From Bugula neritina (taxonomy: Eukaryota; Animalia; Bryozoa), in contig OZ037773.1 of assembly GCA_964035545.1 (NCBI GenBank), positions 7,035,751 to 7,099,750 of the forward strand: DNA of 64,000 bases, in the 5' to 3' direction. The translations under genes were made by a program, and so were the position numbers. Under the pieces are notes generated by a model that made no database searches, was not told where the DNA came from, and worked only from the letters and a program-made list of their open reading frames with translations. Positions 3,220 to 43,800 of the stretch are shown here, in pieces (within the stretch, counting starts at the first letter, position 1; the number at the start of each line of letters is the position of its first letter).

Positions 3220-6200
3220 ATGCTGTTCGAGATGGAATTTCTTTATTTTTTCTTATTGAGTATTTTTATCCAATTGGCGGATGCTAATTTAAGCAAACGG
3301 TTTGAATACAAGCACTCTTTTAAAGGACCTCATCTAGTTCAAAAAGATAGAACCGTACCATTTTGGACCTATGTTGGAAGTAAGTTGAAGCAGTTTGAGT
3401 TTCATTTTCATTTTGGAATAGAATTATATTTAATTTTAAAATTAGTACATACTAATAAGTATTAGAACGATTTGATTAACAAGTAATGATATATCTTAAA
3501 GTTAATCTACTAAAATTTTTGAGTAAAATAGTTTTAGTTTGAACTCTAAACTTAGAATCACCTTCATAATACTAATACTAATAGCTAATAGGTGTGGTTA
3601 TAAAATAATAGATAATATTAATATCACCTTTCATAACCATGATGATTATGATAATCATAATTCACTTATTATTATAACTAGGCCTATGGCTTATGGGTGT
3701 CTGAGACTGATCTTTTACTTTCTAACTGCACACTTGAATAATATTAATATTTAATTGAGAATTAGTTACAACTGCTGTACTAGAGATCCTTCAGTTTCTC
3801 CTAGACATAGTGTTTGATGAACACAGCACAACTGCTCTGATACCGTATTGAGAAGGGTCAACAAAACTACTTGATTTTGAAAAAAAAAAAAAATCAAATT
3901 TTTGTTGTTAACCATTTTTAATAGATACCAATATTTTCTCATTGAATTTATTTGTGATTTATTATTATTATAGTTTAGTTTATAATGAAATGTGTAAAGC
4001 AATAATTTTTAGTATACATTGTAGTATGTTTGTGGTCATTCCCACAATAATCAATTGTTATATATACACGTGATATAGCTACTTTGTTAATGTGTTATGT
4101 ATTTTCTTTCCATTTGATATCATATTTCCATTGGTTTATTTTTAGATGCAATTGCCAGTGATGACTTTGTCCGTCTCGCCCCATCACTGAAAAGTCAGCG
4201 AGGTATGTAAGTCAGCTTTACATAATCAATGGAGTATGCGGGTGAGTTTAGGAATGTAAGTCAGCTGATGTGGTGAGGAAAAAGTTGTATGGTCAGACTA
4301 ACTTACTTTCTTTTTGCATTTTGTCACCACTCCAATGTTGCACTTTTGCAGTTTGATTCTGCAAGAGACGGAGTAATTTAATCTATAGGCAGGTTATAAG
4401 CTTTATTTTCCATGGTATGTTAGATAGATAGATTAAGGGAACCTGTCGCAACCTGTTGAATACTGTACTGGATGTGCTCACTCCTTCTATGTCTTTATGC
4501 AGGTTTGATATGGAACAAGTTGCCTGTTGACTTCCCCAACTGGGAGGTTGAGTTGACGTTTAAAGTGGCTGGCAGAGGGAGAATAGGAGCTGATGGTCTG
4601 GTATGTAGGCTGCTGCCAGTATTTGTAGTCAGCTGCTGTGTTTTTATTTAAATACTGAAGTATGAAAACATCTCAGCCTAATAGTTGCTTCATGTAAGCA
4701 TAATTTCTAATTGCTATCAACCAGCCCTATAGAAAAATTGACATAATAATTTGAGATAAGATAAAGGCTCTCAGTGTACATCTTCTAAACTCCTTGCTGC
4801 TCTAACATTTGAAAATGGCTCCAAACTTAATGCCCATGTGGTGAGTATTTCGAATATATGCTGGTGCAAGTATATCAAGACTAATTCACTGTCATTTCAC
4901 TTGTATGAGTAGTCTAGCTAGTTTATCATTCTTTGTTGTATTATAATGTAATGTAGCTGAATGGTAAATCCGTCCTATAACTGGTTCGAGCTTGTTATAG
5001 TCTAAGGATAGCTTTACAGTATCATATGCATGCGTATCACGATTGACAGTGGGTGCTCTCACTATAATGTTGTCACTGTATGACAAGTGCTCTGTTACTA
5101 TAATTTTGCTACTGTATCACACAGGCTCTGTCACTTAGCTTTTGAGAGCGTACCAAATATTAGATATATACTATAATAATATTTCAATAAAATTGTTCTT
5201 TGTCATCGTTTGTCAGTGTATTTGAATAGAATTATATCGCTACTTGGACGCATCTTACTGTCGGTATGATTAATAAACCATATGAGTATAACTGTAAATT
5301 ATTGTTATCCAGAACTGTTGTGACATGCTGATCTCTTGTGACATCACTAACTGCTTGCTGTAGGCATTCTGGTACACCACAGGAAACGAGGCCCTGACTG
5401 GCCCAGTGTTCGGAGCCCAAGACAATTGGAACGGGCTGGGAGTGTTTTTCGACTCCTTTGATAATGATGGAGGGGTAAGTGGGGGTTGTTGTAGTTAAGT
5501 GAGTGGTTATTCCTTTTAGACATTTGACATTTCATAATACTACCTAGAGAGTTGGTGTACTTTAACTGCTCTCTGTGCCATTCCTGGGATATTATATATA
5601 GCAATCTTATTGATTTGTATTTACTGTGTAAATTGGCTTGCAGTAACTGCTCTATAGTAGGTAGTTGTCTAGCCCTTGTCGTGTGCACACTTTATCTCCT
5701 GCTCTAACCAGTTCTGTTTTTGATTCTGAGAGTTTTTCTTCAAATATGGCCTTTAGAAAAGACAACTTCAACAATTTACAAGTTTGCTGTTTCTTATTTT
5801 AAGTCTACTGTATGGCTTATTTAATAGGTAAAGTAGAAGTTTTTCTTAATTTTAATTTGAAAAATTTTATGCTAAAACTAATATTATCTTAAGGTAAGCA
5901 GAATATGAAATATTTTATCTATTTTCACTCAATTTTGTAGTTTTAATATAAAACTATTTTTAACAAAAATACAAAGTTTTTGTTTTCCCTGTTAAGTTTA
6001 AATTTGTGATGTAATTTTCCGTGCATGTACTATTTTAAGACTGACGTGCAGGTAAACTAGATATACTCGTAGTTGACAATACAGTGTAGCTATACACCTT
6101 TCTAACTGCCTGCAGAATTACCCCAGTGTTTGTGTTGCTTTTATTATTTTGCTGGACCTTTCTTGAGTGTATTGTGTATTATTTTTACACTCATGAGTTT

Positions 6201-9200
6201 ATAATTGATTGCCTCGATTAGCCTTAAATTTGTTTCTTTTTTCTGAAGCTGGTTTTTTATTATGAAATTTAGTTGAAATGTATTTCCCGAGTAAGAAAAT
6301 TACTGCAAAATGATTTATTTCATTCCAGAGTGTCTCATTTTTACATGAGCAACTTTCAACTACAAAAATGGAAAGGCAAGATTTGAAGATTTTTTTCACT
6401 CAATCATTTAGACTTGGTTCTTCCTTTCTGAATCTAGGTTTGTCTGAAACCCAAACTTTTGAGCACCTCCCAGGCTAGGATACCATTAACATCATGCTGT
6501 ATGCTTTCAAGATTGAAGTTATTTTCACACACATTTATTGAACTGGGTTTCCCAGGGACTAGCTGTATTATGATTTTGCTGTTTTTGTCACCTGTTGACC
6601 CTTACTTCTATGTGGAACAACAACCCTTACTTCTTTGTAGAGCAATAACCCGTACATCAGTGCACATCTGAACGATGGTACAAAGAAGTTTGACCACCAG
6701 ACAGACGGCAACCAGAACCAGCTGGGTGGCTGCATGAGGGACTACAGGAACAAGCCATTCGCTACGAAAGCTAAAGTCAGATATGAGAACAAAGTTCTGT
6801 CGGTATGTATGGACTGAGTCAGATGTGTGGGTAGTAATCAGATGAAGTTTGAGTATGTTTGATGTGACCCATTCAGTAGAGATGATGGGCTAGCATCAGC
6901 CCTTCTCCAACTTTGTATTATACTGGGTCTAGAACCCTGCAAGCACTCTTAATGTAGTAAACTATGATCGTGGCCTGCCTTAATACTTAATAGTCATTAG
7001 TTCTAGCCACTACTTGCGTCTAGCCTACAAATCTCTAATGGTAATAACAATCATGTTTACAAGATTTTAACTTCTGCTAGAGCTGAGTCTATGTAGTTGT
7101 GGCCAACCTTACAGTGGATTGAGTACTGTGTGTGAATCAACAGTGTGTGTACTGTGAGTGAGTTAACGATGTAAGTCAACAGTGTAAGTGCTGTCAGTAC
7201 TAAGAGTGCTATAAATTAACTGCTGCACTACTAAATATTCACTGCGGAGTAGCTCTACTCTACTCTTCTTGTGCGATCACAGATGTTCTTGAGCAGTGGG
7301 CTAACAAAGCCTACAGCCGTGGAAGATGGTGCCGAGCATCTCTATGATTTGTGTGCCTACATACCAAACGTAGAGTTACCCGGCAGCGGGCACTTTAGTG
7401 TGTCGGCAGCCACCGGAGCCCTAGCAGGTAACACCTCTTGCTACCGTGGTGGTTATTCGGCAGCAGCGCCTGGTTACTCACCGCTTGTCAATTTACTGCG
7501 CTTTGGGTGTTTGTGTTTTAGCACCTGATTACTGCTAACTTTAAACGATAACACAACTCCCTGGCGAGTTCCACCCCCTGCACTGTGTTTATCTTATGCA
7601 CTAAGATACTGAGAGAGTCACTGTGATTAGCCTAGCCAGACGTTGTCTCACAGCTCTAGAACAATCTCTTGAGATTTTTACTTGCGCCATGTTTCCTGCG
7701 TTATGTCTACTTGAGACATAACATGGCTGATCACTATTGACTCTCTTTGTATCTCTTCTGTTAACACTGCTTTCCATGTCTCCGTGTTTCACAGTCCAAA
7801 TTGCTAACTCTGTGTGTGTGCTGCCAAGCTTGTCTGTTTCATTTTCAGCTGTCTATTCACAATGGTTTAACTAGCAGTGTCACTGAAGATAGTTTTGATG
7901 TGTGTAAAGTAATAATGGATGTAGACCTGCAACCCGGCGGGCATTTTAGTGTATCTGCCGCTACAGGTGGTTTGGCAGGTGGGTTATGTGCATAGAAACA
8001 GGTAGCTCTTAGTGTTAGCAGGTGCCTTTAGGAGCAGCTGCTCCTAGTGACAGGCGTCTCCTAGTGGCAAGTGCTCTTAGTGACAGGTGTCTCCTGGTAG
8101 CAGGTGCTCCTTAGTGACAAGTGTCCCCCAGTGGCAGGTGCTCCTAGTGGCAGGTGCTCCTTAGTGACGGGTGTCTCCTAGTGGCAGGTGCTCCTAGTGA
8201 CAGGTGTCTCCTAGTGGCAGGTACTCCTAGTGGCAGGTGTCTCCTAGTAGCAGGTGCTCCTTAGTGACAGGTGTCTCCTAGTGGCAGGTGCTCCTAGTGA
8301 CAGGTGTCTCCTAGTAGCAGGTGCCCCTTAGTGGCAGGTGTCTCCTAGAAGTGGGTAACCTCTTGTGGCAAGTAACCTCTAGTGACAGATGCCGACAAGC
8401 TTTATGAAGTTTTTTCTGATTTTCTCAAGTGACTTTCTCACACACTAGGCATAGTTTAACTCTTTTTGATGAGGGAACTGGGATTTAGATTGTAAGCACT
8501 CTACTCTCCTGCTTTCAACATCTGTCAACTGCACCGAAGCTAACCAATGATTTATTTCTAACACTTCTCACTTTTTGTTGTATTTATTAGCATGAAATAA
8601 TCAATATATTGAAGTTGTTGCCTCTCTGACCATATTGAATCAATGATAGGACAACTCATTAGTATTTATATTTATTGGTCATTTAAAAGATTACAAGTTA
8701 ATTTTACAACTGATTGTAGAATGACTGTTGAAAAATCTTTTGCCAATTATTGCCAAATAATTCAGCTTCTCGCAAGTTTACAGTTGTCGTATAATTATGT
8801 TTTTTAAGTTTTCTTTTTTTATTTATGAAACAAATTTATTTTAATATTTTTGCTGGAATGCTACTTGCAGTGTTGTGGTGAGCAAGACATAAACACTAGT
8901 TTCTCTTTAAATGTTACTAAAAGTTTTTTAAATCCATTATAGTTATCCACATTATTTATTACGCATAATTAAATTTTGGCAACAATGTTTAATTTTAGCA
9001 AAAGCAGTAGCGATTCGTTCATACTAAATCAAATGATATGACTGTTTTCAATGTTGAAAGATGATTTATGCGATAGATGTAATAATTTATAAGATTTATA
9101 TCTGTAAAGTGTTCATTGATTTTGTTCTGTAGGTGATATAAAAATTTTATCTCATGTGTAGATTTTGTGTTTACGGGTTTACATTTATTTTCTGCTTCTA

Positions 9201-11675
9201 GATGATCATGATATAATTTCATTCATGGCTCATAGTCTGAGGACAGAAGAAGAAATGGTAGGTCTGCACACTATCTCAGTCTATCTAATATTTACTAGCA
9301 TTGTCAGTACAGCATACAGCAACTACCTTGGGCAACATGCCATCAGTTGACAAGGGAGTTGTCTATAAGCAGCTCTAAGTTAGGGGTGACTGAGTGCAGT
9401 ATTTTGGGGTTCTCGAGTTTTGAGTTGGGGTTTATTGAAACCCCAAACTCAAGAACTGCAAGCTGCTGCACTTAATCACCTCCAACGTGCAGCTGCTTAT
9501 AGGAGCAATTCTTGACAATGTGTGTCAGTTGACAGAATAATATTATTGATATAAAATGAAACACTTATGAAATTCTCTAATGAATGGTGCTGTTGCATAA
9601 TGACTCGGTATTCTATTCAGAAGTCAAAGCAAGCCATAGCTGACGAGGAGAGAGCCAAGTATGACAAGGAGTTTGAAGAGTATGACAAGCAGCTGAATGA
9701 GGCCAAGACTGAGTACCAGAAGGAGAATCCTGAAGCCAACGCTAAGGAGGACGAAGAGGAAGAATTTGTAAGTAGGCGGGACTATCCAGCTCATAGTGGG
9801 CGGTGACAAGTTGCCTTTAAACTGGGTGTCATGATATCTACTCACTCCACCCTACTTGTGCAGATGTGTTCTCAAAAATCGTCGAGTGGCTGGCAGATTC
9901 TTGGCTGTGTTTCCAAGTTGGGCTCTGTTTTCCAGCTAGTGTTGTGTAGTTAGAAACTAGTTGTGTTGTTGCTTATAGTTTGCAAGTAAACCATAAACTC
10001 ATATGCATTTTGTAATATAATGTGTATAAATAATGCCATACCAGAAGAGACTAGCTTTATTACAAACACTATACTACCATTTCATCAGTATTCAGACATG
10101 TCTACATCTATCTGTGCATTTCCAAAATATTCACGCTCACAACTTGTCTCTCTCGTTGCATTAACTGATATAAAAGAACTGGCTATATGTGTGTATGGTG
10201 CTGATGTTGTTTGACAGTATGACACTGGTGTGAAGGAACTGAAGATGATATTTGATGGCCAAGACCACATACACCAGTCAATAAATGCCATCAATAGAAG
10301 ACTGAATGAGCTAATAGGCACATCACAGCAACTAGCAGCTCAAATAGGACAGCTGGCCCAGCAGGGTGCAGGTGTGCAACAGGTGAGTGTGAAGTGCCGT
10401 ACTAGCTGTCACTGAGCAGGTAGTGTCAGGTGCTCTGTCACTCAGCAGGTAGTGTCAGGTACTCTGTCACTGAGCAGGTAGTGTCAGGTACTCTGTCACT
10501 CAGCAGGTAGTGTCAGGTGCTCTGTCACTGAGCAGGTAGTGTCAGGTACTAGGTCACTCAGCAGGTAGTGTCATGTTATTGACTAGATGTTATGTTGATT
10601 ATTATGTAACTTGTGCAGGCTTTTCCATGTGTTTTTTTACTGACAGGCTGGCCAAATACCTGCCCAGCCACCTGCCCAGCCACCTGCCACAGGTACTGGA
10701 ACACCTGCTATACAACGACATGAAGTAGATCACCTTATAAGAAATGGCAATGATCTGGTTCAACAGCTGAATCAACTAAAGTAAATTTACTCTACCTAAA
10801 GTGGTTGTCATAGTAGCTGCAGTAGTTATCATATTAGCTGCCGTAGTTGTTATATTAGCTACAGTAGTTGTTATATTAGCTACAGTAGTTGTTATATAGC
10901 CTAAAACCTATGCTAGTGGTAAAAGTTATTAGATTTACTGGTTGATATTTTAGAAATAGTGTAGAAAGTATTGCCCGAGAAAAAAGGGACGCCCCACCTG
11001 CACCCCCATCATATGAGGACCAAGCAGGCACCCAGCTAATAAAAAATAATGTTGATGAAATGAAAACTATACTAAAACAGTTGCAAGCTGACGCATATGT
11101 CAATTCACAGGTATATCTGAGTTGAAGTTGTATTGATATAGCGAGATTCATTGTGATATGATATCAGTAAAGCTAGATTGGCCACATCTTACAAACGTTG
11201 TCATTGGTCAACTCACATTACTGGAAATTACGTTCAAATATCATGATGATTGAAAGTAATTACCAGTCATTTTAAAATAGTTCTTTTTTAAATTAAATAT
11301 TATTCTTGTCGTTATGTTTGCATATGTCTAAATATACTTTAATATGTATATAGTAGTTGCACTTGCCTTACTCCTTCATAATGTATTCTGCTCCATAAAA
11401 TATTATGAATATGCTAACTTATCAGTGACGTATTCTCTGCTTTTACAGTGTTGTTGCTCACGATTGTTAGTTTCAGTTATTTTCATAACTCAATACAATC
11501 CTTTGCAGCAAATCCTGTATGTTTGTAGAAAGGAGGAGGTGCCTCAAGCTGTCCTGAAGTTAGCTGCTTATCCACAACCTACTTTGGTGTCTTCATTGTG
11601 GGACAGGTGGTCTTACTCCTTCTCTACAGCGTCTACCAGTCTCGCAAAGAAGCTGCGGCTAAGAAATTCTATTAA
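3220..11675 (+). CDS. LMAN1: ERGIC-53 / lectin mannose-binding 1 (L-type lectin cargo receptor)
   Basis: Exons 3220-3379, 4146-4202, 4503-4600, 5364-5474, 6641-6802, [7283-7427 or 7849-7978], 9202-9257, 9621-9767, 10218-10382, 10647-10780, 10954-11110, 11529-11675. Signal peptide, RFEYKHSFKGPHL, GRIGADGLAFWY, DSFDNDG, CMRDYRNKP, SAATGGLADDHD, coiled-coil stalk, juxtamembrane Cys pair (CPEVSC), TM segment and C-terminal KKFY. ATG could be 3220 or 3232. Confidence 0.96.
7283..7427 (+). CDS. LMAN1: LMAN1 alternative exon 6a (MFLSSGLT...GHFSVSAATGALA)
   Basis: cacag acceptor, gtaac donor, 145 nt, phase 0 to 1; paralogous to exon 6b. Confidence 0.8.
7849..7978 (+). CDS. LMAN1: LMAN1 alternative exon 6b (LSIHNGLT...GHFSVSAATGGLA)
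   Basis: ttttcag acceptor with upstream ctaac branch-like motif (~7804), gtgggt donor, 130 nt, phase 0 to 1. Confidence 0.85.
8005..8390 (+). repeat. Tandem repeat, ~16-18 bp unit CTCCTAGTGGCAGGTG
   Basis: About 20 degenerate copies beginning ~25 nt after the exon 6b donor. Confidence 0.9.
9363..9502. mobile_element. ~140 bp foldback/palindromic element (MITE-like)
   Basis: Nested inverted arms: CTATAAGCAGCT/AGCTGCTTATAG, GGTGACTGAGTGCAG/CTGCACTTAATCACC, TTGAGTTGGGGTT/AACCCCAAACTCAA. Confidence 0.6.
10406..10573 (+). repeat. Tandem repeat, 29 bp unit CTGTCACTGAGCAGGTAGTGTCAGGTGCT
   Basis: About 6 copies directly after the LMAN1 donor at 10383. Confidence 0.9.
10813..10899 (+). repeat. Tandem repeat, 21 bp unit TAGCTACAGTAGTTGTTATAT
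   Basis: About 4 copies in a short LMAN1 intron. Confidence 0.85.
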
Positions 11676-40800: not shown

Positions 40801-43800
40801 TTAAACATGTCCGCCTTTATTTATTGAAAGCTTGGTGGGGAAGCTTCTGCAAACATGGATTGCTATGATGGTTTATGACCTATGTAGTGCCGTTGGAGAT
40901 AGTGAAAAAAGTTTTTTTTCAGCTTAAATAATTACACAATGAACATAAAAGGGGTGTTTCTTGTGCTGTAACTTTTTTATTTACTAAACATTTTCAGCAA
41001 CTAAAACTTTCGTACAAGAAGAGTTTGGATGAGGCCAAAGAACTGCTGTCTAACAACTACAAAAAATATTTTGAGACATTGCGGCGCATCAACCCCCCTT
41101 GTGTCCCTTTTTTTGGTAAGTTGGGGTATTCTTTTTTGCTGTGTCCTTTTCTTTAGTAAATGAACATGCAAAACCTTTTGTTCTCCTTTCCTTATGTCTG
41201 TGTAACTTTTTGTATATCTGGATTTATTCTTGATAAATTTTATACTCTGCAGTGTGTACTGTGTCTGTATATCTAGTTATATATGCTGCAGGTGTGTACA
41301 TGACAAATATTCTCAAACTAGAAGAAGGCAACCCCGATTTCCTGCCCAACACTGATCTCATAAATTTCACAAAGCGTCGTAAAGTAGCGGATATCACTGC
41401 TGAGATTCAACAATACCAGAATCAGCCTTACAATCTGACTCCAGTCTACTCTATACAGGTGTGTATCTAGTTCAGACACTCTGTCTACTCTATACAGGTG
41501 TGTATCTAGTTCACACAACCTGTCTACTCTATACAGGTGTGTATCTAGTTCAGACAACCTGTCTACTCTATGCAGGTGTGTAGTTCAGACAACCTGTCTA
41601 CTCTATACAGGTGTGTATCTAGTTCAGACACTCTGTCTACTTTATACAGGTGTGTATCTAGTTCAGACACTCTGTCTAATCTATGCAGGTGTGTATTTAG
41701 TTCAGACAACCTGTCTACTCTATACAGGTGTGTATCTAGTTCAGACACTCTGTCTACTCTATGCAGGTGTGTATCTAGTTCAGACAACCTGTCTACTCTA
41801 TACAGGTGTGTATCTAGTTCAGACAACCTGTCTACTCTATACAGGTGTGTATCTAGTTCAGACAACCTGTCTACTCTATGCAGGTGTGTAGTTCAGACAA
41901 CCTGTCTACTCTATACAGGTGTGTATCTAGTTCAGACAACCTGTCTACTCTATACAGGTGTGTATCTAATTGACTGTCTGAAGACTATACTATGTTTAGA
42001 CAAGCACTAGATCCTATAGAATTTCCCTTACCTTGGAGGCCTTGTTATTAGTTATCATAATATAAATAGCAGACAACTCCTAAGTATGAACAGTGGGTAA
42101 TAGATTTCCCACTACAGACTAAAGTACCAAAGATTGAAGTTTTCCAACACCTGTGGATGTTGTGGTGAACACTGCTATGAAACTGCTTTATGCCTGATTT
42201 TAGTTCATTTAGTCTATATTCATCTGGAACATGTGATGTGTGCTCTTGCAGGATTTCCTGGAGAACCTAGACCCCTGGCAAGGAAAAGATGACAATGAGC
42301 TCATAGAGCACCTGTTTGACCTGTCATTACAGATAGAGCCCCGCAATGTCAGACCACCTCCTAAGTTTGTGAGTACCACTATATTGTGCCTACTGTGTAT
42401 TTAATTATTGTTATAATTTAGTAAAGTTTTTATTTAAAGGAATTAAGACTGTATTTACCCGATTTGTTTGCAGCCTAGAAAATATGACCCTGTAGTTCTG
42501 AAATCGCCAGGCATAAAATCACTCAACAAGCAAACCATATCCGCTACGATTCGAAATCATTTCATTGGCTCATCAGAAAGCAGGTTTCCGTTTCCCAATT
42601 CCAAGGTATCAGTCACTGTGAGTATCTATCAGTCACTGTGAGTATCTATCAGTCACTGTGAGTATCTATCAGTCACTGTGAGTATCTATCAGTCACTGTG
42701 AGTATCTATCAGTCACTGTGAGTATCTATCAGTCACTGTGAGTATCTATCAGTCACTGTGAGTATCTATATGTCACTGTAATTATATGTAAATGACTTTG
42801 GGTATATGTATGTCAGTGTCTGTAAGTCACTGTAAGTATATATATATCACTGTGAGTATCCGTAGGTAACTATAAGTGACTGTAAGGATCTTAAAGTCGT
42901 TCTACGTATATGTAGGTTACAGTGAGTATCTCTGTAAGTATATGTAGGTTACAGTGAGTATCTCTGTAAGTATATGTAGGTTACAGTGAGTATCTCTGTA
43001 AGTATATGTAAGTCACTATAAGTATCGGTAAATAAATGAAATTGCTTAGAATAGAGCTGTGAATCTGCTCACTTCTCATTTTAGTCAACGTATCAGTAGT
43101 AGGAATATAACCAGCAGGTATTTATTAGTATGTTGGTCACTATACTCAACTACTACGCACTGTCTAAATCCAGCGCTGTTACTAGCCTGTGTGTTTAAAG
43201 CAACTAATGTTTAGGTTGGATTTGATCTTTGATTAGAATTCCAATAGTCTGAGCTCTTTGTTTCAGGATGATGAAGATGGGCGTAGCACCATGTCTAGCA
43301 CACCTCCACACACTCCAAACACACCAAAAACTCCTCCACCGCGTCCACACAGTCCTCCAAGAACTCCTCGAACTCCCCCACCCAATAAGAACACTCCACC
43401 TCGCACTCCCCCGCACTTTACTTCTAGATCCTTCCTCGGTTAGTCATCTTAACTATCTAGTTAGTACGTCATCTAGTTAGTATATCATCTAGTTAGTACG
43501 TCATCTAGTTAGTATATCATCTAGTTAGTATATCATCTAGTTAGTATATCATCTAGTTAGTATATCATCTAGTTAGTACGTCATCTAGTTAGTATATCAT
43601 CTAGTTAGTATATCATCTAGTTAGTATATCATCTAGTTAGTATATCATCTAGTTAGTATATCATCATGGAGTTGTCTCCTTTCAGGTGACAGTCAAATCA
43701 GTCTGCTGTCAGACAGCAGCACCGTTAGACAGAGCCAGTTCAGTCTTAACTCTCAGTTCTCCGCTGCCAGCACCGCAACGCTGACCGACCCTGTCTTTGG

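Follow-up and report, generated by a model that had tools for sequence, protein, structure and literature searches.

Can a single gene offer two different sugar pockets on one and the same cargo receptor? The question is raised by a window of 64,000 nucleotides (nt) from the bryozoan Bugula neritina, the whole stretch of DNA analyzed here (contig OZ037773.1 of assembly GCA_964035545.1, positions 7,035,751 to 7,099,750 of the forward strand), in which an orthologue of the L-type lectin gene ERGIC-53 (LMAN1) contains two adjacent versions of the exon encoding the sugar-specificity loop. These exons, termed 6a and 6b, are best explained as a conserved mutually exclusive exon cluster derived from tandem exon duplication, a reading to which a probability of about 0.65 is given. 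Either 6a or 6b would be joined to exon 7 in productive mRNA, and the sugar pocket with a neighboring loop would be the only difference between the two isoforms, the stalk being common to both.

Two exons for one segment of the lectin domain

The gene and the exons concerned are as follows, with positions counted in the window.

About 3232 to 11672, forward strand: ERGIC-53/LMAN1-like gene, identified from exon open reading frames (ORFs), tblastn with the intronless contig L018, Pfam PF03388 and best PDB matches to ERGIC-53
6641 to 6802, forward strand: exon 5, constitutive, with a PF03388 match; RNA joints 5473>6640 and 6801>7282 in four runs
7283 to 7427, forward strand: exon 6a, 145 nt, acceptor boundary cacag/ATGTTC and donor boundary TAGCAG/gtaaca
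7428 to 7848, forward strand: intron between 6a and 6b, 421 nt, with about 90% identity to contig L005 of the sister lineage
7849 to 7978, forward strand: exon 6b, 130 nt, acceptor boundary tttcag/CTGTCT and donor boundary TGGCAG/gtgggt
9202 to 9257, forward strand: exon 7, constitutive, beginning (D)DHDIISF; RNA joints 7425>9200 and 9256>9620 in four runs

Both exons run from phase 0 to phase 1, lie between an AG acceptor and a GT donor and have a length of 1 mod 3, which confirmed the coordinates, lengths and splice sites of the paralogous 145- and 130-nt exons first proposed in a sequence-only reading of the window. The end of exon 5, at 6802, is in phase 0, and the start of exon 7 is in phase 1. 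Translation of the possible products left 5-6a-7-8 and 5-6b-7-8 open, and the predicted frame shift upon inclusion of both exons or of neither was reproduced, with a stop 8 codons into 6b in 5-6a-6b-7 and a stop after 4 codons in 5-7. Exactly one of the two exons would be needed per mRNA to keep the frame, and RNAs with both or neither would probably be removed by nonsense-mediated decay.

The exon 6a product comprises 48 amino acids ending in GHFSVSAATGALA, with a longer loop, the motif CAYIPNVEL and TGALA, and that of exon 6b comprises 43 amino acids ending in GHFSVSAATGGLA, with TGGLA and near the human length. In an alignment to PDB sequences, both matched one and the same segment of human ERGIC-53, which ends in SAATGGLA. 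The alignment bore out the proposed retention of the Cys in both exons, the addition of five residues in 6a (in the loop preceding this Cys) and the position of the 6a Ala, which sits where 6b and the human protein have the second Gly, i.e., Gly252. Each exon would encode two beta-strands, the disulfide Cys, whose partner is carried by exon 5, and the Gly251-Gly252-Leu253 loop that holds mannose through its backbone NH groups.

The identity of the gene was supported by several lines of evidence. Exon 5 matched PF03388 (Lectin_leg-like) with 57 bits (E = 1.7e-15), and exons 6a (23.5 bits) and 6b (20.1 bits) matched the same stretch of this family, positions 184/186-215 of 230. Significant matches among solved structures in the PDB were ERGIC-53 chains only. 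The product predicted from stop-to-stop ORFs has a signal peptide, a multi-exon L-type lectin domain, a charged coiled-coil stalk, a transmembrane segment and a C-terminal KKFY; the last exon encodes SSCPEVSC with two stalk cysteines, followed by the transmembrane segment and AAAKKFY. The KKFY signal is shared with L018, compared to KKFF in human, and the exons were collinear in tblastn with this intronless full-length contig. Alignments with the human chain and with L018 placed equivalents of the sugar- and calcium-binding residues Asp121, Phe154, Asn156 and His178 in exons 3-5 (GADGL, FFDSFDNDG, and KFDHQTDG), and the equivalent of the Gly251-Leu253 loop was TGGLA in 6b and TGALA in 6a.

Conservation of the exon pair across lineages

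Relatives were sought by phmmer with exon 6a against 1.84 billion representative proteins, where the matches were exon-sized ORFs on unspliced eukaryotic contigs; likewise, all that the exon ORFs retrieved from the protein database were exon-sized ORFs predicted on unspliced contigs. The matched contigs were fetched, and metagenome contigs of the Joint Genome Institute (JGI) and ENA were additionally scanned by exon alignment. The following lineages were recovered.

Lineage A (window, L005-L008): 6a with TGALA, 6b with TGGLA
Lineage B (L003): exon 5, 6a with TGAIA, 6b with TGGLA, exon 7 and exon 8 on a single 2.5-kb contig
Lineage B' (L017): arrangement as in L003
Lineage C (L004/L016): 6a of 151 nt with TGAIA, 6b with TGGLA
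Lineage D (L009): 6a with TGAVA, 6b with TGGLA, exon 7
Lineage E (L001/L002): 6a-type exon carrying TGGLA; the 650 nt available contain no second copy
Lineage F (L020/L021 plus L011-L015 and L023): three copies, x, y, and z

In lineage F, contigs L020 and L021 hold exon 5, x, and y, and contigs L011, L014, and L015 hold y, z, and exon 7, with L020 and L014 overlapping over 756 nt at 93% identity. Copy x has 139 nt and TGGAA (L021 1492-1630), copy y has 163 nt and SAATTPEVIP, a loop without Gly-Gly (L021 2133-2295, L014 212-374), and copy z has 130 nt and TGGLA (L014 763-892). The two intronless JGI contigs L018 (94-1674) and L019 contain an ERGIC-53 with a single segment of the ancestral type, in an ORF of 526 amino acids starting from TTG and ending KKFY; they could be transcript contigs or come from an intron-poor organism, and were used as outgroup only. 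The candidates P0005, P0007, and P0008 were rejected as chance matches to bacterial adhesin-like proteins, and L022 as unrelated sequence.

All copies in all lineages have AG and GT splice sites, and their lengths are all 1 mod 3. The upstream copies measure 139, 145, 151, and 163 nt, and their phase is nevertheless constant, which is of consequence only for copies joined in frame to exon 7. The last copy always has 130 nt, and this 130-nt exon with its AG and GT was identified in the window and L005, L003, L017, L004/L016, L009, and L014. Orthologues of the 6a type were found in L003, L017, L004/L016, L009, and L001, all of them open, in phase and with AG and GT, so that no disabled 6a was seen in relatives. 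The orthologue on the marine-biofilm contig L001 (303-447, also in L002) combines the long loop and CAYIPNIEL with TGGLA, showing that Ala is usual yet not fixed in the 6a type; in this lineage 6b may have been lost or the intron may be longer.

Over the last 15 codons, exons 6a and 6b of the window differ by 8 synonymous and 3 non-synonymous changes, and since 8 of these 15 codons differ synonymously, the duplication is old and the copies have not been homogenized. Trees built from the exon peptides united the 6a types (88/90) and placed the 6b types with human and L018 (95/86), so that the duplication is older than the separation of these lineages and 6b has the ancestral form; the lineage F copies x and y had long branches and were unplaceable. 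By these sequence comparisons, 6a is regarded as the derived type and 6b as the ancestral type.

Synonymous sites were saturated between lineages, with proportions of synonymous differences (pS) of 0.6-0.98 and of non-synonymous differences (pN) of 0.2-0.38 for 6a, 0.24-0.35 for 6b, and 0.14-0.21 for exon 5. Closer pairs gave ratios of non-synonymous to synonymous rates (dN/dS, omega) of 0-0.27, and those of 6b between lineages were 0.10-0.27. Between L003 and L017, 18 synonymous and 9 non-synonymous changes were counted in 6b (omega 0.10) and 32 and 7 in 6a (dN 0.067), while copy y had 12 and 0 between L021 and L014. Between the window and L005 the counts were 3 synonymous and 1 non-synonymous in 6a and 3 and 0 in 6b, and identity was 96-100% in exons and about 85-92% in introns. 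Both copies are thus judged to be maintained by purifying selection in several lineages, in agreement with the old duplication under selection that had been suspected from the diverged synonymous sites; the proposed comparison of both exons in relatives recovered the pair with omega well below 1.

These data bear on whether one of the exons is a decaying, functionless relic of the duplication. In favor of decay are the minor share of 6b in the sampled RNA described below and a non-synonymous rate in 6a and 6b that is 1.5-2 times that of exon 5. Against it, both copies are open, in phase and provided with AG and GT in six lineages with saturation at synonymous sites, exon conservation is well above that of the introns, and 6a is the main expressed exon. 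A relic is highly improbable and is excluded by three features of 6b seen across lineages, namely the constraint on its peptide, the invariant length of 130 nt and the conserved GT donor.

Use of the exons in RNA and the fate of exon 6b

RNA evidence was obtained from Logan contigs of four runs (X1-X4) from three studies, placed on window positions 5300-9900. The contigs are spliced RNA, as GT..AG joints are present and intron sequence is nearly absent. The runs differ from the window by ~3% in exons and ~10% in introns and match L005 (e.g., S39G at 7397), a divergence among material of the same label that fits cryptic lineages within one named species; some RNA runs bear the label symbiont metagenome. 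Contigs nearly identical to the window were met in JGI metagenomes, under names with the prefix AY690838, the accession of the B. neritina mitochondrial genome, and in marine-biofilm metagenomes, and all of this points to the B. neritina species complex.

The joints 4>5 and 7>8 were found in 4/4 runs and are constitutive. The joints 5>6a (6801>7282; depths 675, 104, 120, and 87) and 6a>7 (7425>9200; depths 1386, 116, 178, and 100, whole-contig means) were also present in every run, and 6a is therefore spliced in frame on both sides. The joint 5>6b (6801>7848) was found in X1 and X2 only, which represent one sample, with depths of 185 and 33, i.e., about a quarter of the 5>6a depth in that sample, although a depth is a single figure per contig, inflated by a repeat array, and does not give an isoform ratio. 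It is thus 6a, the exon for which the sequence-only reading had asked for RNA proof, and not 6b with its canonical look that is the main exon in the sampled RNA of all four runs; 6b is a minor choice in this RNA and probably a regulated one. Neither a 6a>6b nor a 5>7 joint was among the listed contig joints of the four runs, where absence from contigs is weak evidence, and frequent inclusion of both exons was accordingly not seen. Of the junctions proposed for checking in the sequence-only reading, 5>6a, 6a>7, and 5>6b were thus recovered from contigs along with the lack of 6a>6b; 6b>7 was not. The exact 6a>7 or 6b>7 junction pattern had no match in the JGI metagenome contigs, from which it follows that this collection holds no Bugula transcripts.

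Several observations weigh against a cluster in which both exons are used productively and exclusively. The joint 6b>7 was not among the listed contig joints of the four runs, and the 5>6b joint comes from one sample with a shorter side of 29 nt, even though constitutive joints in X1 and X2 have equally short sides. A contig of X1 that begins precisely at the 6b acceptor continues past the donor into the intron. The same start is shared by a 926-nt Logan contig, L025, which was found by exact-protein look-up, has 99.9% identity to the genomic contig L005 and extends ~750 nt beyond the donor. The frame of this read-through ends at a stop after GGLCA, 5 codons past TGGLA. All RNA evidence consists of contigs, in which rare variants are dropped and from which true isoform ratios are not obtainable, and the runs come from a sister lineage whose exons differ by about 3%. 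Conserved inverted repeats or competing RNA pairing were sought in four lineages, and none was conserved or convincing, so that neither an RNA structure nor any other element able to impose exclusivity came to light. Finally, Gly to Ala would be a small change at the sugar loop, and the 6a-type exon of L001 even has Gly.

The read-through raises the possibility that 6b is mainly a regulatory, non-productive exon, in which splicing of 5>6b is coupled to intron 6b-7 being retained, the RNA is detained or degraded, and receptor output is lowered. The other introns had no contigs at all in X1, and the 6b read-through hence exceeds the background of pre-mRNA. The weak GTGGGT donor, together with an array of donor-like decoys directly downstream of it, is perhaps the cause of retention, and a productive 5-6b-7 mRNA would then be rare or limited to certain conditions. 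The array is as follows.

8034 to 8348, forward strand: tandem array of ~19 half-units of ~16.5 nt (Tandem Repeats Finder period 33, 9.5 copies)

It begins 56 nt downstream of the 6b donor, and each half-unit contains (G/A)CAG/GTG, the 7-mer that spans the end of exon 6b and its donor. Exact GCAGGTG occurs 11 times within 7975-8340, compared to 4.6 expected in the whole window. The RNA contigs beginning at the 6b acceptor enter and cross the array, which was also found in L005.

This regulatory role for 6b, to which the missing 6b>7 joint, the read-through of the X1 contig and L025, and the early stop of the read-through frame also lend support, is nevertheless considered unlikely. A regulatory exon needs no constraint on its peptide, and 6b has an omega of 0.10-0.27, with 0/3 changes between the window and L005 being non-synonymous. 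The exact 130 nt and the GT donor are kept in every lineage with 6b, and the array is absent behind 6b in L003. In X2, a contig of exons 7-8 begins exactly at exon 7, a weak hint that implies a second upstream partner in the assembly graph of that run. In addition, contigs cannot show absence.

The same read-through contigs, together with X1 coverage that ends near 8380, could alternatively mark 6b as an alternative last coding exon for a truncated, soluble lectin fragment ending just past TGGLA, which would also account for the protein-level constraint on 6b. This explanation appears very unlikely: the tails encoded by read-through are short and bear no relation to one another in different lineages, no lineage has lost the GT donor, L025 extends ~750 nt past the donor with no poly(A) tail, and the region near 8320-8400 shows no evident poly(A) signal. 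Moreover, the fragment would be devoid of the final strands of the lectin fold (DDHD..SF..), and the residues of the human carbohydrate recognition domain extend to 268 (PMC10944485).

The mutually exclusive cluster is preferred over both accounts since the protein-level constraint on 6b, its fixed 130 nt and its conserved GT donor argue that a productive 5-6b-7 mRNA exists somewhere. As for the means of exclusivity, the introns between copies measure 164-470 nt across lineages (421 nt in the window), too great a length for steric exclusion. The frame shift combined with nonsense-mediated decay would be the simplest route.

Two repeat observations adjoin these results. The GCAGGTG 7-mer was also found in another array of the window at 41572-41886. 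Within intron 7-8, a ~65-nt piece at 9362-9426 had a bin depth of 3257 in X1, with many contigs on both strands and differing flanks; it has the look of a short interspersed repeat that is found in many other transcripts.

The sugar loop, known systems and significance

Backbone nitrogens of Gly251, Gly252, and Leu253 bind the site-3 mannose in ERGIC-53, and the Gly252 position corresponds to Asp261 in VIP36 (PMC3912170). The missing side chain at Gly252 leaves a shallower pocket in ERGIC-53 that accepts the glucosylated D1 arm, and VIP36 D261G gains binding of monoglucosylated glycans (PMC3912170). These reports support the statement, made in the sequence-only reading, that the loop contacts mannose and that the Gly252 or Asp residue governs glycan preference. 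The Ala of 6a is compatible with sugar binding, as VIP36 tolerates a residue other than Gly there and Ala places a small side chain in the same position. In lineage F, the loops TGGAA and TTPEVIP would be expected to alter the pocket much more than Ala. The gene would probably make lectins with different sugar pockets, i.e., receptors that may differ in glycan or cargo preference and could be mixed in one tetramer. We know of no earlier study of Ala at the Gly252 position.

The ERGIC-53 tetramer forms through the stalk (PMC10944485), and the yeast homologues Emp46p and Emp47p form a heterotetramer, as cited in the same paper (PMC10944485). Mixed 6a/6b tetramers are plausible because the stalk is common to both isoforms and the yeast pair offers a precedent. 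As far as that citation goes, Emp46p and Emp47p resemble the proposed isoforms in being ERGIC-53 homologues with different lectin heads assembled through stalks, and differ from them in being the products of two genes with different stalks; in B. neritina the stalk would be identical and mixing is proposed by analogy.

Mutually exclusive exon clusters derived from tandem duplication are well known from Dscam1, tropomyosin, PKM, and SNAP25. The present exons are like these in being adjacent and homologous, of the same phase and similar length and with conserved splice sites, and are unlike the clusters with docking and selector sequences in that no RNA pairing was found and exclusivity would most simply follow from the frame shift. 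A close parallel is given by exons IIIb and IIIc of FGFR2, which are mutually exclusive, encode the second half of immunoglobulin domain III and change ligand preference according to the choice made. As in FGFR2, the alternatives are paralogous neighbors in tandem that supply the C-terminal half of a beta-sandwich binding domain, and all other parts of the receptor are invariant. Unlike FGFR2, the receptor here is an L-type lectin of the early secretory pathway with a glycan ligand, wrong combinations shift the frame, and up to three alternatives occur in a relative; the cluster is known from sequence and contigs, and any tissue control or functional switch would be a prediction. A full-text literature search returned no description of mutually exclusive or duplicated exons for ERGIC-53/LMAN1 or for L-type lectins. 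The cluster adds to the known class of tandem-duplicated mutually exclusive exons, with the specificity loop of a cargo lectin as the swapped piece.

To our knowledge, the sugar pocket of ERGIC-53 has been thought fixed within a species, with other preferences supplied by the paralogues VIP36, VIPL, and ERGL. A more far-reaching proposal, held tentatively and rather doubtful at present, is that a whole lineage, probably the cheilostome bryozoans, diversifies its main export lectin of the endoplasmic reticulum (ER) by alternative splicing and not by gene duplication, with two to three interchangeable loops, tuned ER export, combinatorial tetramers and, in Bugula, the array of decoy donors as a switch. 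If true, the loops on offer would be Gly-Gly, Gly-Ala, Gly-Gly-Ala-Ala, and TTPEVIP, and cells could tune the exit of glycoproteins from the ER. Natural and selected loop variants on an otherwise identical receptor would also be material for studying the effect of position 252 and of the loop on glycan and cargo choice. For splicing biology, the locus offers a conserved two- or three-exon cluster and, in Bugula, a donor-like repeat array behind the minor exon.

Exon-level diversification would here take the role that gene duplication plays in vertebrates. As between ERGIC-53 and VIP36, in which this residue determines how deep the sugar pocket is and how well a glucosylated D1 arm is tolerated (Gly252 and Asp261, respectively; PMC3912170), the position after the first Gly of TGxL varies between the exons, with Gly in 6b and Ala in 6a. 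The vertebrate variants are separate genes, unlike the exons of one gene described here, and the relatives go beyond the variation between ERGIC-53 and VIP36 in carrying TGGAA and TTPEVIP, the latter without Gly-Gly. The assembly searched (216 Mb, 321 contigs) also contains a second L-type lectin gene, which is VIP36-like (L024, G000:C2:23435841-23436660, minus strand); it encodes TGDLA, with Asp at the Gly252 position, and its equivalent exon is single.

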